Shown here: positions 2,349-12,725 of the stretch, one piece after another | How positions within the stretch are numbered: position 1 is the first letter of the stretch | How the letters are laid out: each line of letters begins with the position of its first letter | IMG/VR virus record: IMGVR_UViG_3300033159_000018 | Location: 1 to 12,725 of that record | Reading direction: 5' to 3' (one strand) | DNA: 12,725 bases | The notes under the pieces: model-generated | What the model saw: the letters and a program-made list of their open reading frames with translations, nothing else | Database searches by the model: none | What the model was told of the DNA's origin: nothing | Translations under genes and position numbers: made by a program

Positions 2349-2847
2349 CAACTCCCACCTTCTCCATTATTTCTTTTTTCAAAAGCTCATAATCTTCAGG
2401 CTTCCAAACCTTAATTATGCTGTAGTGGTCTTTCTGACCTCTCTCGAACACGACGGGTTTGGGCAATTTAATTTTCACCGTACTTACTTTTTCCGCGGGA
2501 TATACATATTTTATAATAAGGTTCTGGTCGTCAAACTGTAAATCGTAGACCTTCTTGGGGAGGAAGAGTAAATTGGTCACGTTGTATGTACGTTCTTCTT
2601 TAGCTAATTTGACCACTATCTTTTCTGGAAACAGTAAAACGTTGTATATGCCCTTCTTTTTCACGTTTATTGTTACCGTAGTCCTGGATTTCCTTTTGGC
2701 TTCAGGGTCGTTGCAATCTGCTTGGTATAATTCGTAAACGTCATCTCCTATTTCCTTGACCTTATAGCACTCCCAGGGAAACGAATATATCTTGACGTCA
2801 TGGTTATGGGTCTTTACTCTCCTTATTTTTTTCTTGTAGCCTTTCAT
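2335..2847 (-). CDS. Hypothetical basic protein (170 aa), co-transcribed with the ATPase
   Basis: Long ORF with a TTTAAA box about 25-30 nt upstream (leaderless). It overlaps the ATPase start. Confidence 0.75.
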   Translation of the reverse strand: MKGYKKKIRRVKTHNHDVKIYSFPWECYKVKEIGDDVYELYQADCNDPEAKRKSRTTVTINVKKKGIYNVLLFPEKIVVKLAKEERTYNVTNLLFLPKKVYDLQFDDQNLIIKYVYPAEKVSTVKIKLPKPVVFERGQKDHYSIIKVWKPEDYELLKKEIMEKVGVDANK

Positions 2848-2955
2848 ATGTATAAACTTAGCATATTTGCTTTAAATTACTGAACTACATAACGCCCTTC
2901 CAAGACAACCGATCAAAAGTTAAATAAATATACTAACCTAATTAGATTGGTAACT

Positions 2956-3588
2956 ATGTTAGATAACCTTTCTCTCCTTTTAGAAAAATATTCCCCTGTC
3001 CGCTTAGAGGAGATGCGGGATTATCTAGCCAAACAATATGAGGAGAATTTGTTCGAGATATATTGGGGTATGCTGATGTTAGTCCTAAATGAAGATAAAG
3101 AGCCAGAAATACTCTCAAAAGAAGCTGAAAAAATAAGGAAAGATTTTGGATTTATGTTTGATGATGACGGGACTATAGAAGAATATGTTAATACGGTAAT
3201 GAACGGGTTACAAAAACTTATTGATGAATTAATGAAAAATGAAGAGGAGTTCTACAACGAGGCATTAAATTCCGATAACCCTAATTTCCTAATAACCACT
3301 TATTATTCGTTGTATTTACGCTTCGTAACAAAAGTATACTTAAAACTACAGACTGTCACAAAAACAACAAAAGATTCTAGGATTAAAGATATATTCAATA
3401 TCGCTAATTTTCTAGTAGGATTTTTCGGGATGCCTATATTACTCTATATAAAGAAAAAAGAAGTATTCCCTTATATATCTGAACTAAGCGTAGTATTATT
3501 ACACGCACTAGTTGCCGATAGGACACCTGTACCGTCGAAGGACTCCTTAGGATATTATCTATTTTTCAAGATCCACGGAAGGTGCTGA
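2956..3588 (+). CDS. Hypothetical alpha-helical protein (about 210 aa)
   Basis: Long ORF. The ATG at 2956 lies about 26-35 nt after TTAAATAAATA (2920-2930). Divergent from the 170-aa gene. Confidence 0.75.
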   Translation: MLDNLSLLLEKYSPVRLEEMRDYLAKQYEENLFEIYWGMLMLVLNEDKEPEILSKEAEKIRKDFGFMFDDDGTIEEYVNTVMNGLQKLIDELMKNEEEFYNEALNSDNPNFLITTYYSLYLRFVTKVYLKLQTVTKTTKDSRIKDIFNIANFLVGFFGMPILLYIKKKEVFPYISELSVVLLHALVADRTPVPSKDSLGYYLFFKIHGRC

Positions 3589-4208: not shown

Positions 4209-4257
4209 AAATAGACATTATAAGTGGTATGGTGCAATATTTAATAGGGGATCCAGA

Positions 4258-4437
4258 ATGGTGGAAACACAAATCGATGAGCAGAAAAAGATCCTGGAGA
4301 GGATGCATAGCAGAGTAGATTATATCATGAACGCTTACAAGGAATACCTAGACGCGTTAGCAGAGTATGACAGAACTGGAGTGTTGAAAATTCACGGAAG
4401 AGTTCTTTATGTAAAAGAACATAAAAACCAAGAGTGA
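4258..4437 (+). CDS. Small protein (59 aa), absent from the ORF track
   Basis: GGGG SD at 4247-4250 and ATG at 4258. Translates as MVETQIDEQKKILERMHSRVDYIMNAYKEYLDALAEYDRTGVLKIHGRVLYVKEHKNQE*. Confidence 0.75.
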   Translation: MVETQIDEQKKILERMHSRVDYIMNAYKEYLDALAEYDRTGVLKIHGRVLYVKEHKNQE

Positions 4438-6116: not shown

Positions 6117-6593
6117 TCAGTGTTGAACTACCCATTCATCTTCTACTACAATATTTTTAACCCTAATTAAACCCTTATAAGCGGACACGCGGTAGGGTTC
6201 TCCATTCTTGGCTGGAGGGAGTATGACTCCCTCCAGCTTGGATTTCTTCAGTAATTCCTCAGCTTCTTGCCTCGAATTTGTAGTTCCCAAGCTCTCCATA
6301 TAAAATAATAGAACAGATTTGTGTAATTGCAAAAGTTGTACCTGGAACGGCAATGGAATTACACCAACAATACAATCGTACTGTGTAGTAAGTTTCTTCA
6401 GTTCATCTATGTTATTTGGCAGTGTGTCTATTTTATTTATATTAATGCACACTGTTGCTAAATCCTCTTGTTGCATCCTCAAAAGTTCGTGCCTGGTTAC
6501 TAGCAAGCAGTTCTGAAATTTCATAGGTTGGGATTGACCTGAACTTGAAGCTTGACCTGGAGTAGAGGTGTATTGACTTTGAATCTGTGCCAT
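6117..6593 (-). CDS. Hypothetical protein (158 aa), candidate Csx16/Csx20-like ring nuclease fold
   Basis: The gene itself is well supported by its promoter and SD GTGGGG. The motifs LLVTRH and DCIVGVIPL resemble Csx16 (FVSRH...GDxVIGTLP). The functional call is by eye only. Confidence 0.55.
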   Translation of the reverse strand: MAQIQSQYTSTPGQASSSGQSQPMKFQNCLLVTRHELLRMQQEDLATVCININKIDTLPNNIDELKKLTTQYDCIVGVIPLPFQVQLLQLHKSVLLFYMESLGTTNSRQEAEELLKKSKLEGVILPPAKNGEPYRVSAYKGLIRVKNIVVEDEWVVQH

Positions 6594-6599
6594 TTTTTA

Positions 6600-6650
6600 T
6601 CCCCACTATACTCTTCGCAGAATCGGTATATAAAGTTTTCTGCCTAACAT
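6600..6650 (-). promoter_or_regulatory. Conserved strong promoter/leader cassette
   Basis: ATGTTAGGCAGAAAACTTTATATACCGATTCTGCGAAGAGTATAGTGGGGA. Confidence 0.75.
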
Positions 6651-6690
6651 AACTGCACAACCACGAGGGGCGAAAGGGCGAGTAGAAATT

Positions 6691-6708
6691 CTCAGACAGC
6701 TGTTTGAG
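6691..6708. promoter_or_regulatory. Palindromic operator variant CTCAGACAGCTGTTTGAG
   Basis: One mismatch, centred about 69 bp upstream of the TATA of the 6593 gene. Confidence 0.72.
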
Positions 6709-6767
6709 AGAAAAGCGTCCAGCAGTGACAGCTGAACAAGTACGAAAGCCCGACCCTCACGGCAAAA

Positions 6768-6791
6768 TCCCTCAAACAGCTGTTTGAGGGA
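6768..6791. promoter_or_regulatory. Palindromic operator TCCCTCAAACAGCTGTTTGAGGGA
   Basis: 24-bp perfect palindrome. Confidence 0.8.
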
Positions 6792-6856
6792 GAACGTGTT
6801 TAAAAACACGGCTTATCTGAGCCAGAACTTGGGTGAGCCGAAATTATGAATTTAAA

Positions 6857-6881
6857 AAATTCTCCTAAAAGGGATCAAAAA
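6857..6881 (+). repeat. Degenerate inverted copy of the CRISPR-like repeat (anti-repeat), followed on the minus strand by a T6 tract (6859-6854)
   Basis: Plus-strand TCCTAAAAGGGATCAAAAA compares with the repeat TCCGTAAAAGGGATTGAAGG, in the opposite orientation to R1 and R2. Confidence 0.6.
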
Positions 6882-6913
6882 TGGAAGAATATACATTTGC
6901 TTCGTGCTGAATT

Positions 6914-7009
6914 CCTTCAATCCCTTTATGGATGCGATGGTGAAGGGGCATGTCTAAATTTAATTATGATGATACTTCCGTTTCCTTCAATCCCTTTTAC
7001 GGATGCCTC
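6914..7009 (-). CRISPR. Mini-CRISPR-like array (2 repeats, one 45-nt spacer), no cas genes in the window
   Basis: On the minus strand, R1 (7009-6984) is GAGGCATCCGTAAAAGGGATTGAAGG and R2 (6938-6914) is ATCGCATCCATAAAGGGATTGAAGG. Both resemble Sulfolobales 25-nt repeats (ATCCC-AAAA-GGGAT stem and ATTGAAAG 3' handle). The spacer is 6939-6983. Confidence 0.75.
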
Positions 7010-7030
7010 AAAGTTTATACTCAGCCGACT

Positions 7031-7046
7031 TTAATAAGTTTTTCTG
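7031..7046 (-). promoter_or_regulatory. BRE-TATA promoter for the mini-array
   Basis: Minus-strand CAGAAAAACTTATTAA. Normal archaeal spacing puts the TSS at about 7008-7010, the first base of repeat R1. Confidence 0.65.
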
Positions 7047-7113: not shown

Positions 7114-7695
7114 CTACCTCGGCTTTGCGAAAAAATCCAGGATACTGCTTTGCCTGCCGTGGGACTTACTTACCAGTTGCTGTATTTCTTTCAGTTTCCT
7201 CCTTATGTAATTGACGTCCTTTAACTGCTGAAATCTGCCGAGTAACATCAAAGTAACGTCTCCGTAGTCGAAAGAATAGAATAAGGCTTCTTTCAGCTCG
7301 TGCCTAGTAGAAATGCCAAGATACCAGTGCTGGTATTTAGACGCTTTAATGAAATCATGGATTGTATAGTCTCTGTACTTCGGATCAGACGCGTATCCTG
7401 CAATCACTTTATAGTTATTTTCCCTCAGCTTGTCGGCAATTTCTAGCTGGCTCAGGGTATGAATAGGGACAACGTAAGCTATGTTCTTTGGGACTGGAAG
7501 AACGTAATTAATATTGTCTGGGTATAACGCTACCTCTATCTTGTTTCTGTTAAACCAGAGTTCCCTCAAGTATTTCTTATAATTTCTCTCTATAAGCAAC
7601 GCCTTTTTGTTGTCAAAAAACCTGGGGTATATTATATAGCCAGTGACGTCTTGAAGCTTCTGAATTAGAGGGTTATAGCCTAATGCTAGAATCAT
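7114..7695 (-). CDS. Protein of about 193 aa with a C-terminal PIP box; possible divergent TGT/DpdA-like barrel
   Basis: The true start is likely the ATG at 7695 (SD GGGGG, TATA TTTAAATA at 7735-7728). The C-terminus QSSILDFF matches the PCNA-interaction consensus QxxIxxFF. Confidence 0.65.
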   Translation of the reverse strand: MILALGYNPLIQKLQDVTGYIIYPRFFDNKKALLIERNYKKYLRELWFNRNKIEVALYPDNINYVLPVPKNIAYVVPIHTLSQLEIADKLRENNYKVIAGYASDPKYRDYTIHDFIKASKYQHWYLGISTRHELKEALFYSFDYGDVTLMLLGRFQQLKDVNYIRRKLKEIQQLVSKSHGRQSSILDFFAKPR

Positions 7696-7783
7696 TTTAA
7701 CCCCCATTAGTACCCTGGGCATGAAGTTATTTAAATTTCTAACGAGTTGTGCAGAACTGCGACGGGTGGGTGAGTCGAACAAA

Positions 7784-7805
7784 CCCTCAAACAGCTGTTT
7801 GAGGG
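7784..7805. promoter_or_regulatory. Palindromic operator CCCTCAAACAGCTGTTTGAGGG
   Basis: 22-bp perfect palindrome about 63 bp upstream of the TATA of the 7695 gene. Confidence 0.8.
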
Positions 7806-7899
7806 AAAAATGCCGTTCGACCAACCCCAGCGTGCTGAGCCAGCCTGCACGGGGAAAGGGTATAAAACAAACCGTTCTTTCTCTTCATAAAAAATAAAA

Positions 7900-9772: not shown

Positions 9773-10096
9773 ATGAAAATAAAATTGAACCCCGAGATGA
9801 GTGTCGTAACCTTTAAGTTAGAGGAGGATCTACTCCAAAAACTCGATTTATATGCTATGAAGTCAGGGTTAACTAGAAGCGATGTGATTAGAGAAGCACT
9901 GGAATCCTATGATTGGGGGAATAAGAAGAAAATAATGCCAATTCGTATTCGTACGATAACAGTTAAACTGGAGGGGGAGTTATTGCAAAAGCTCGATTTA
10001 TACGCTGTGAATGCAAGGGTAACTAGAAGTCAGGTAATTAGAGAAGCTCTCAAACATTATCTATCCTCATTTGATGGTGAGGGCGGTGAGCAATGA
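9773..10096 (+). CDS. Tandem ribbon-helix-helix transcription factor, aCcr1/CdrS-like
   Basis: Two RHH units: [33 protein letters not shown] and [33 protein letters not shown]. The duplication is also visible at the DNA level. Confidence 0.88.
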
Positions 10097-12132: not shown

Positions 12133-12620
12133 TAATGCGGTGAGGCATGATATGTTCCCATTTCCAGCTTCTCTTTATAAAAATATCTTTTTCTCTATCT
12201 ATCTTTAGTATAATAGGTTAGTTCACAGCCCTTCTCAATTATATCACTTATCGTAACCACGTTATGACGTGTTGAAAATTTCTCTCAACCATATGTTTGG
12301 CTAATCTAAACGAAAAATTTTGAGAATTTGGCATGCAACGGAGCAAAACATCACAAGTAAAATATTGTATAGGAAATCTTTTCCAACTGAAAAATATTAT
12401 TATTAGCCATATCACAGAACAAAACAGAGTAGACAAACTATCACTATTGGTATAAAAACCGCTTCCGTAAATATCTGCATAGGCAAACTATCACTATAAA
12501 TATATATAAGAAGCACAGAACAGAACAAAACAACGAAAATAATACTACTGTTACAACATTTCTACCTAGTATAAAAAGGAACTCAATAAAGTATATACTG
12601 GAGAAATTATCTTGGGGGGA

Positions 12621-12725
12621 CTGACTTCCTCCCCGCCCTGGAAGGGTCGAGGGTTCCCTCCCAGGGGGCTCATCGTTCCCACCATCGGTTCGGGTTTACA
12701 TCCCTCATCTGGTGGGCAGTCGAGT
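12621..12725 (-). mobile_element. Right end of an IS200/IS605-family (tnpB) element, including the omega/reRNA scaffold region
   Basis: The minus strand reads ...GGGAACCCTCGACCCTTCCAGGGCGGGGAGGAAGTCAG. This is the typical subterminal hairpin and TCAG end of Sulfolobales IS605/IS1341-type elements, and GC content rises abruptly here. Confidence 0.8.
12670..12725 (-). CDS. tnpB: C-terminal fragment of the TnpB RNA-guided endonuclease, truncated by the window edge
   Basis: Reads STAHQMRDVNPNRWWER*, a tail characteristic of Sulfolobales TnpB, directly before the right-end hairpin. Confidence 0.7.
   Translation of the reverse strand, partial: STAHQMRDVNPNRWWER

Follow-up and report, generated by a model that had tools for sequence, protein, structure and literature searches.

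We analysed a 12,725-bp stretch of viral DNA (the window), which spans the whole of the metagenomic contig Ga0326758_100290, recorded in IMG/VR as IMGVR_UViG_3300033159_000018. Its minus strand carries two repeats, R1 and R2, that resemble those of CRISPR arrays. We found that this pair is an expanded version of a conserved viral cassette whose complete relatives contain a single repeat. Judging from the sequences, the cassette may encode a solitary-repeat RNA that mimics the repeats of the host and engages host Cas6 and effector complexes, like the RNA anti-CRISPRs (Racrs), and that has been expanded in this virus to a repeat-spacer-repeat arrangement. We prefer this explanation tentatively, giving it a little less than an even chance. 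Its main rival is a mini-array that produces a guide.

Two repeats behind a predicted promoter

The window comes from a hot-spring archaeal virus of the Sulfolobales, a bicaudavirus resembling the Sulfolobus monocaudaviruses (SMVs). It is 80-83% identical in nucleotide sequence, over parts of its length, to SMV1, SMV3 and SMV4 (Bicaudaviridae). The two repeats, of 26 and 25 nt, lie 45 nt apart (Table 1). Their 3' ends are alike (GGGATTGAAGG), and differences occur at the first three nucleotides, at one substituted position and at a 1-nt indel within the A-rich middle. The pair is well beyond chance: a 20-nt repeat pattern with at most three mismatches has two matches in the window, where 0.03 are expected, and the motif GRATTGAARG has two exact matches, where 0.17 are expected.

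A promoter-like sequence with a B recognition element (BRE) and a TATA box precedes R1. The center of the TATA box, near position 7033, predicts a transcription start at about 7007, which is the 5' edge of R1. The cassette promoter resembles an early-gene promoter of the same genome (GCAGAAAACTTTATATACC, at 6643-6625). The two have a CAGAAAA-plus-TATA core in common, although the cassette lacks a palindrome of its own. The leader is short, since the homology shared with other cassettes extends no further than about 6 nt upstream of the TATA box. The BRE/TATA element lies 29 nt ahead of R1, with an A/T-rich block at about -13. In the leaders of related arrays from other Thermoproteota, a comparison whose leaders came from outside the Sulfolobales, a TATA-like box occurs at about -37 and a block at about -13.

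Pfam searches of 20 open reading frames (ORFs) in the window revealed no cas domain, and neither did PHROGs searches of 10 of those 20. The repeat region has no match in Rfam to CRISPR-DR or to any other family. Repeats of Sulfolobales are essentially unstructured, so similarity of structure is not an applicable test for them. With no cas genes found, only two repeats and a location on a viral contig, the unit does not qualify as a canonical cellular CRISPR-Cas locus.

These results agree in large part with the original prediction, made from the window sequence, of a promoter-driven orphan mini-CRISPR unit in an early-gene island of a Sulfolobales virus. Its repeats on the minus strand, with their lengths and spacing, were confirmed, as were the viral lineage, the lack of a cas gene and the lack of a long leader. 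The promoter that it placed so as to start transcription at the first repeat was also recovered, as a predicted element. The early-gene island is real in the sense that an early-type promoter stands among genes that share one regulatory unit, beside a predicted anti-defence family.

Kinship to host CRISPR repeats

The comparison places the window repeats in the Sulfolobales family of repeats that end in ...ATTGAAAG. R2 agrees with the repeat of Acidianus ambivalens at 20 of 25 positions, a value attained by 1 in 1000 dinucleotide shuffles of the window (P ~0.001). Within the last 15 nt, 14 are the same, and the sole difference is a change from A to G at position -2 of the handle. R1 agrees with the same host repeat in 21 of 26 aligned columns, with one gap. 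The A. ambivalens repeat, which ends in ...AAAAGGGATTGAAAG, was taken from a table in a paper on an unrelated topic (PMC12919310).

Two further host repeats were compared. A loose scan for the family pattern found an array of 35 repeats in Candidatus Acidianus copahuensis, of the GTTGCATCC...GGAATTGAAAG type and with spacers of 33-43 nt; R2 matches its repeat at 19 of 25 positions. With the repeat of an array that targets this virus family (L263, see below), the match is 15 of 24 positions. An exact-pattern scan of metagenomes of the Joint Genome Institute (JGI) recovered no host array with the exact viral repeat. Among the matches listed, the nearest host repeat is 80% identical, and the window repeats are identical to none. 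The suggested relationship to Sulfolobales repeats therefore holds as membership of the family, but not as identity with a host repeat.

The altered handle that had been noted earlier is real. Both window repeats end in the 8-nt tag ATTGAAGG, which is kept in all related cassettes. In structural terms, bases -6 to -8 of the tag are held in protein pockets, bases -3 to -5 decide self-recognition in type III systems, and base -2 is exposed (PMC7694759). The viral tag leaves -3 to -5 and -6 to -8 unchanged and alters -2. Because this position lies outside the bases used for protein pockets and self-recognition, loading of the viral repeat onto effectors is plausible. We infer that the viral RNA should still be cut by a Cas6 of the Acidianus type and loaded onto effectors. 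The predicted cleavage positions (Table 1) follow by analogy from what is known of Sulfolobales Cas6.

A family of single-repeat cassettes

The exact-pattern scan of JGI metagenomes also yielded five viral contigs (L259, L260, L262, L264 and L265) in which a single repeat occurs in the same surroundings. We sampled further contigs without reference to the repeat, through homologs of the downstream protein, and thereby obtained four more loci. L272 has the cassette in another intergenic site, L287 has a divergent repeat (GCGTCCATAATGGATTGAAGG) and a weaker T-tract, the L288 contig starts inside the repeat, and L289 is the same as L265. There are thus eight sequence variants. The six complete relatives (L259, L260/L262, L264/L282-284, L265/L289, L272 and L287) all have one repeat, L288 is incomplete, and two repeats occur only in the window. 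In this respect the notion of an orphan mini-array was not borne out, because the window copy belongs to a conserved single-repeat cassette and, of its eight variants, is alone in having two repeats.

An alignment of the eight variants defines a cassette of about 140 bp. Its parts are, in order, the BRE/TATA element, about 20 nt, the repeat mimic, a variable segment, a conserved tail, a variable C/T-rich stretch and GAGAATTTTTTAA. The T-tract in this last part is likely to be an archaeal terminator of the cassette transcript. Two blocks, GGATTGAAGGA and CATTTTTGATC, are invariant across the variants. The first of these is kept in L272, L287 and L288, all of which were found without the repeat as a probe. 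The BRE/TATA motif is kept in all seven variants that cover the promoter part.

In most cases the gene just downstream of the cassette is a homolog of SMV3 gp69, which belongs to the predicted anti-defence family ADG.68. Among 12 contexts of such homologs that were sampled, the cassette is present in five, absent from six and indeterminate in one; SMV3 lacks it. The contigs have different upstream flanks, which indicates that the cassette is accessory and has moved. BLAST found no cassette in GenBank archaeal viruses, including SMV1-4 and Acidianus two-tailed virus (ATV), and a cassette model had no match in the ATV genome or in the relevant region of SMV3. There were no other occurrences in IMG/VR, searched with three cassette motifs, and none in PLSDB. 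An initial loose scan of viral sequences gave chance matches only.

Hosts meet the cassette. The array L263 (contig Ga0208662_105813), from a sample shared with one of the related viral contigs, has 33 repeats of the GATAATCC...GGAATTGAAAG type. Its spacer at 1279-1325, which at 47 nt is the longest in the array, matches the cassette from just after the TATA box through the repeat mimic. This match implies that the cassette is a real part of these viruses and is exposed to their hosts. The flank of this protospacer in L260-type cassettes is ACT. The protospacer-adjacent motif of Sulfolobales type I-A systems is CCN or TCN, from which ACT differs.

The L264 and L288 contigs break at the left edge of the cassette and inside the repeat, respectively. 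These breaks suggest variation within the population, in context or in repeat number, that confused assembly.

Origin of the second repeat

The cassette model splits the window copy into two matches, 7049-6975 (model positions 3-76) and 6935-6831 (model positions 46-153). Between them, 39 nt (6974-6936) that reach 3 nt into R2 are not matched. The window copy can thus be described as a one-repeat cassette with an insertion of 70-71 nt, which in size would correspond to a repeat and a spacer together. With its 45 nt (39 nt if the other register is used), the spacer is within the 33-47 nt range of host arrays.

The main rival is a genuine virus-borne mini-array that serves in conflicts between viruses. 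In such a scenario, a locus consisting of a leader and a repeat, initially 'empty', would have received one spacer from host Cas1-Cas2, and host Cas6 and effectors would turn the resulting CRISPR RNA (crRNA) on a competing virus, a plasmid or a host gene. The clean single insertion (one repeat and 45 nt) that separates the window from its one-repeat relatives fits this idea, as does the spacer length. The promoter abuts the first repeat, with a TATA-like box and an A/T-rich block placed much as in the leaders of related host arrays, and the handle retains the bases that effectors require for binding. There are also precedents, namely Sulfolobus polyhedral viruses 1 and 2 (SPV1 and SPV2) and the single-spacer array of the bicaudavirus ATV (PMC6858448).

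Several observations speak against it. Acquisition should yield identical repeat copies, whereas R1 and R2 differ: R1 is of the L259 allele type, and R2 with the segment downstream of it is of the L288/L264 type. Since the two are different alleles and not fresh duplicates, textbook spacer acquisition fits poorly. In addition, the spacer opens with 9-12 nt (AAACGGAAGTAT) that are similar to what normally follows the repeat in L259 and L260, which also argues against textbook integration. Described mini-arrays have repeats identical to those of the host, whereas the nearest host repeat here is 80% identical among the matches listed. The six complete relatives lack any spacer. Finally, no target of the spacer was found in GenBank records of phages and archaeal viruses, in PLSDB, in IMG/VR (three exact 21-22-mers) or in 34 related loci, a search that did not extend to metagenomes and host genomes. 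The proposal that the spacer guides against a competitor or a host gene thus gained no support from these collections. The collections searched likewise gave no target for the variable segment or for the tail. On balance we consider a genuine guide-producing mini-array possible, but less probable than the decoy.

The insert is explained better by recombination between two cassette alleles, or by an aberrant integration, to judge by the alleles involved. Two other derivations were tried and rejected. The similarity of the spacer to the leader is no better than chance, so it is not a diverged leader copy left when promoter and repeat were duplicated in tandem. A supposed third, degenerate repeat following R2 shows weak similarity and has no counterpart in relatives.

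A more trivial possibility is that assembly joined two alleles, given that the two-repeat form is known from one contig only and that the R1 and R2 alleles occur separately in relatives. However, R1 and R2 share 16 consecutive identical bases, which is too few for a de Bruijn join at usual k-mer lengths, and the unique 39 nt need a source. We grouped this possibility with two others of the same kind. One is chance similarity of the repeats, against which stand the host-repeat match (P ~0.001) and conservation of the element in eight variants. The other is a micro-protein, for which a 14-codon ORF is open in most variants. The minus-strand micro-ORF (MYILPFLI...) was rejected: its would-be start codon is ATG, GTG, TTG or CTG (CTG in L287), so that all four bases occur at the first position, seven of eight substitutions alter the first or second base of a codon, and the variants divide into two frame classes at the 3' end. 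Even as a group, these explanations are very improbable.

The conserved tail

The 3' part of the tail and two flanking bases, read on the plus strand (6871-6884), correspond to the viral translation-start motif GGGATCAAAAATGG. The start motif GGGAT.AAAAATGG has three matches in the window, at 6871-6884 (plus strand), 6590-6603 (minus strand) and 4248-4261 (plus strand), where 0.18 are expected. The copy in the tail agrees with the adjacent gene start (6603-6590) at 13 of 14 positions, and with the second gene start at 12 of 14. The shared motif could reflect antisense pairing with those mRNAs, or it could be a relic of a gene start on the plus strand.

In one alternative explanation, the cassette is a regulatory small RNA or a bidirectional control element that is not mainly directed at CRISPR. 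Its tail would pair with early mRNA starts, especially that of the ADG.68 homolog, or it would supply a promoter and start on the plus strand, and the likeness to repeats would be a relic. The excess of start-motif matches, in which the element itself is counted, is consistent with this alternative, as is the position of the cassette directly upstream of the ADG.68 homolog in most variants. The terminator motif is moreover TATA-like on the plus strand and lies about 26 nt from a plus-strand ATG. However, invariance is as marked in the repeat part, especially in GGATTGAAGGA, as it is in the tail, and it would not be expected of a relic. A 14-nt match in A-rich sequence is also weak evidence. 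The plus-strand ORF that starts at ATG 6881 is not conserved: its length is 3 codons in L272, where codon 4 is a stop, 9 codons in both the window and L288, and up to >38 elsewhere, and it runs across the repeat in three frames. We therefore rejected it as a gene. A stable hairpin of repeat and tail was not supported either. It looks plausible at 37 C, but predicted folding is no better than that of shuffled sequences (z from -1.5 to +1.2), and the RNA is nearly unfolded at 75 C. Overall, such a regulatory role seems unlikely.

A possible RNA decoy

The explanation that we prefer, a repeat-mimic RNA decoy, would work as follows. Early in infection, the cassette would be transcribed from about position 7007 as a short RNA that starts at the repeat and is about 90 nt long (about 160 nt in the window virus). 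Host Cas6 would bind this RNA and probably cut it 8 nt before the end of the repeat. The products, tagged with AUUGAAGG, would tie up Cas6 as well as the Cas5/Cas7 backbones in effectors of types I-A and III. Having no useful target, they would compete as an RNA decoy in the manner of a solitary repeat unit (SRU) or Racr, and would complement the protein anti-defence genes next door. In the window virus, aberrant spacer integration or recombination of two cassette alleles would have added another repeat together with about 39-45 nt of unique sequence. One crRNA-like RNA of the repeat-spacer-repeat form (6991 to 6922) would then be released as well.

We favor the decoy because the six complete relatives lack a second repeat, and because the 16-20 nt that follow their tag are variable and offer no conserved guide. 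The likeness to host repeats, the conservation and mobility of the cassette, its agreement with computational hallmarks of SRUs and Racrs, the unchanged binding and self-recognition bases of the tag, the lack of a target in the collections searched and the host spacer against the cassette also count in its favor. The choice between guide and decoy, which had been left open at the outset, is not decided by sequence, and it is the architecture of the family that somewhat favors a solitary-repeat decoy.

A number of points weigh against the decoy. The case for it is drawn from sequence, and no archaeal Racr has been demonstrated in the cited literature. The window has the form of a working mini-array, including a spacer whose 45 nt lie in the 33-47 nt range of hosts. 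A pure decoy does not explain the invariant 23-nt tail, which could have another function. The two-repeat state is known from one metagenomic contig. Moreover, the host repeats compared are those among the matches listed, and a host with a ATTGAAGG repeat is possible.

The cassette might instead act as DNA: its leader and repeat could offer the host adaptation complex a decoy or a landing site, or could be a point of recombination with host arrays. The expanded copy shows that insertion beside the repeat can occur, a proposed function of SRUs is to allow integration into arrays (PMC10651486), and the contig breaks of L264 and L288 hint at population heterogeneity. R2, however, is the viral version of the repeat and so was not captured from a host array, while the conserved promoter, tail and terminator indicate an RNA product. 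We regard a role at the DNA level as quite unlikely, somewhat more so than a regulatory element.

A broader version of the RNA decoy proposal is conceivable, though it is a long shot. The cassettes would then be the first family of RNA anti-CRISPRs in archaeal viruses, and the same decoy would also serve as a minimal CRISPR locus, a 'seed' open to extension by host adaptation or by recombination, with the window virus caught after it gained a spacer. Through its complementarity to the start of the predicted anti-defence gene next to it, the invariant tail would tie mimicry to the control of this gene, and the change from A to G at -2, an exposed, base-pairing position of the tag, would mark viral as opposed to host crRNAs.

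Genomic neighborhood

The features of the locus are listed in Table 1.

Table 1. Positions of the cassette parts and of adjacent features in the window
Feature	Position	Strand	Basis or remark
Upstream gene, phrog_17844 (unknown function), homolog of SMV3 gp68	7114-7824	-	PHROGs and homology
BRE/TATA-like promoter, CAGAAAAA + CTTATTAAAG (motif CAGAAAAACTTATTAAAG)	7046-7029	-	Left boundary of the conserved cassette
R1, 26 nt	7009-6984	-	Sequence; GTAAAA allele as in L259
Predicted Cas6 cut in R1	between 6992 and 6991	-	Would leave the 8-nt tag ATTGAAGG at 6991-6984
Intervening 'spacer', 45 nt	6983-6939	-	Sequence
R2, 25 nt	6938-6914	-	Sequence; common allele, ATAAA
Predicted Cas6 cut in R2	between 6922 and 6921	-	
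Variable segment X	6896-6913	-	Alignment; 16-20 nt in relatives, always AA first; near-identical to the L288 segment
Conserved 23-nt tail, TGTATnTTCkTyCATTTTTGATC	6873-6895	-	Alignment, pattern scan and motif scan
GAGAATTTTTTAA, right end of the cassette	6852-6864	-	Conserved in aligned variants; T-tract 6859-6854
Gene-end element after the cassette	6768-6824	-	Small hairpin and T-run 6824-6809; palindrome CTCAAACAGCTGTTTGAG 6790-6768
Neighboring unit	6117-6711	-	Second palindrome 6711-6691, early promoter 6643-6625, translation-start region, 158-aa gene
Downstream gene, 158 aa, homolog of SMV3 gp69, predicted anti-defence family ADG.68	6593-6117	-	Homology

In SMV3, gp68 and gp69 are adjacent with no cassette between them. 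The window has about 400 bp in addition, which include the repeat unit and a second copy of the gene-end hairpin and palindrome. In L272, where the cassette is absent from the corresponding site, the gene-end element directly follows the upstream gene.

The gp69 protein is listed as predicted anti-defence gene family ADG.68 in supplementary file 3 of PMC11065993, and an anti-defence role of the family itself is a prediction. The window member has a confident AlphaFold model with a predicted local distance difference test score (pLDDT) of 87.7, consisting of an alpha/beta fold with the first 21 residues disordered. It has no meaningful match in the PDB (template modelling score <=0.33), no Pfam domain and no resemblance to Cas6 or other RAMP proteins. 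At least 46 homologs occur in hot-spring metagenomes. In the related viral contigs L274, L275 and L276, the minus strand at about 2450-3150 encodes a protein of some 220-230 aa that has a Csa3_N domain and a helix-turn-helix and directly adjoins the ADG.68 homolog. As Csa3_N is a fold of CRISPR-associated regulators, this neighbor is a hint that the neighborhood deals with host CRISPR.

The palindrome CTCAAACAGCTGTTTGAG occurs at ten intergenic sites in the window (12-nt cores at 903, 4464, 5431, 5913, 6694, 6774, 7789, 9661, 10777 and 11217). At least five genes share a unit in which this palindrome is followed, about 55 nt further on, by a promoter like GCAGAAAACTTTATATACC and then by a start region like GTGGGGATAAAAAATG. 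Early and anti-defence genes of SMV2-4 are preceded by regulatory sequences with inverted repeats and strong promoters (PMC11065993), and the palindrome-promoter unit of the window looks like this shared regulatory unit. The palindrome is probably a repressor binding site. A 107-aa protein encoded at 9773-10096 (plus strand) has two ribbon-helix-helix domains (Pfam RHH_1, 1.4e-14) and its own palindrome-plus-promoter unit. Its gene was built by an internal DNA duplication of 94 nt (9807-9900 and 9957-10050). This protein is a candidate binder of the recurring palindrome, resembling the anti-CRISPR-associated (Aca) regulators.

A further observation concerns the end of the contig. At 12608-12706 (minus strand) there is a GC-rich stretch, with 63% GC in a genome of 39% GC, that has two strong hairpins (z of -1.9 and -2.5). 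The stretch is conserved in the related contig L279 (1590-1700, plus strand). It has a sub-threshold Rfam match to HgcC, with 20.7 bits against a gathering score of 50, and is possibly a structured viral RNA.

Significance

The CRISPR parts described so far in archaeal viruses are a few arrays and bare repeats. No test of a repeat-mimic RNA against type I-A or type III systems, which dominate in Sulfolobales, is reported in the cited literature. The cassette is compact, with its own promoter and terminator within about 140 bp, and is easy to synthesize. Its natural variants amount to informative mutants, with one or two repeats, two repeat alleles and the divergent repeat of L287. The cassette bears on RNA decoys in archaea, on the gain of a spacer by a one-repeat viral locus and on the role of handle position -2. 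The group of SMV-like viruses is said, in work by Erdmann and Garrett from 2012 and 2014, to provoke spacer uptake by the host while escaping it.

Comparison with known systems

The hallmarks of SRUs and Racrs are a promoter upstream (within 250 bp), no cas genes, similarity to a host repeat and anti-CRISPR or anti-defence neighbors (Camara-Wilpert et al. 2023, PMC10651486). The cassette has a predicted promoter, no cas genes, a repeat similar to that of a host (80%, and 14 of the last 15 nt) and a predicted anti-defence neighbor. As in SRUs and Racrs, a repeat look-alike stands behind its own promoter on a mobile element and is predicted to give a short non-coding RNA. The six complete relatives are also solitary, whereas the window copy, with two units, is not. 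There are other differences. In the present case the host is archaeal, its CRISPR systems are of types I-A and III and its repeats are unstructured, whereas the tested Racrs of PMC10651486 were assayed in bacterial systems. The cassette also has a conserved 23-nt tail after the repeat, and its function is predicted.

Mini-arrays, in the sense of Medvedeva 2019 (PMC6858448) and Faure 2019, have two or three repeats, one or two spacers and no cas genes. The window copy has this form, with two repeats, one spacer and no cas domains. It does not have host-identical repeats, a target in a related virus or mobile element, or identical repeat copies. The mini-arrays of SPV1 and SPV2 (PMC6858448) are similar to it in that they occur in viruses of Sulfolobales hosts, have one or two spacers and an intergenic location, lack cas genes and have a promoter-bearing leader at the first repeat. 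However, SPV repeats match those of the host and SPV spacers match a sister virus, whereas the window repeats are 80% identical to a host repeat, carry a changed handle base and are unequal, and their spacer has no target that we could find.

By virus family, the nearest precedent is the mini-array of ATV (PMC6858448), also a member of Bicaudaviridae, with one spacer between two repeats. The ATV repeats were reported as 'CRISPR-B' (PMC6858448), and a cassette-like sequence is absent in ATV. The sole candidate repeat pair that we found in ATV (AJ888457), near 37526-37620, is of another repeat family and lies at a position that does not correspond. Stand-alone repeats of Sulfolobales viruses and conjugative plasmids (PMC6858448) consist of a single host-like repeat, which is the state of the six complete relatives. 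Those repeats were described without recognizable leaders, whereas the cassette has a promoter that abuts the repeat, a tail and a terminator.

Chromosomal arrays of Acidianus have in common with the window copy the GCATCC, the A-rich middle and the GG(G/A)ATTGAA.G of the repeat, and the range of spacer lengths. They differ from it in that the viral repeats have GAAGG instead of GAAAG, in two copies instead of tens, with no cas genes and a very short leader. Taken together, these comparisons suggest that the element is a variant of known virus-borne CRISPR parts: an archaeal, promoter-equipped cassette with a putative repeat mimic, a conserved altered tag and a conserved tail, in an expanded form in this virus.

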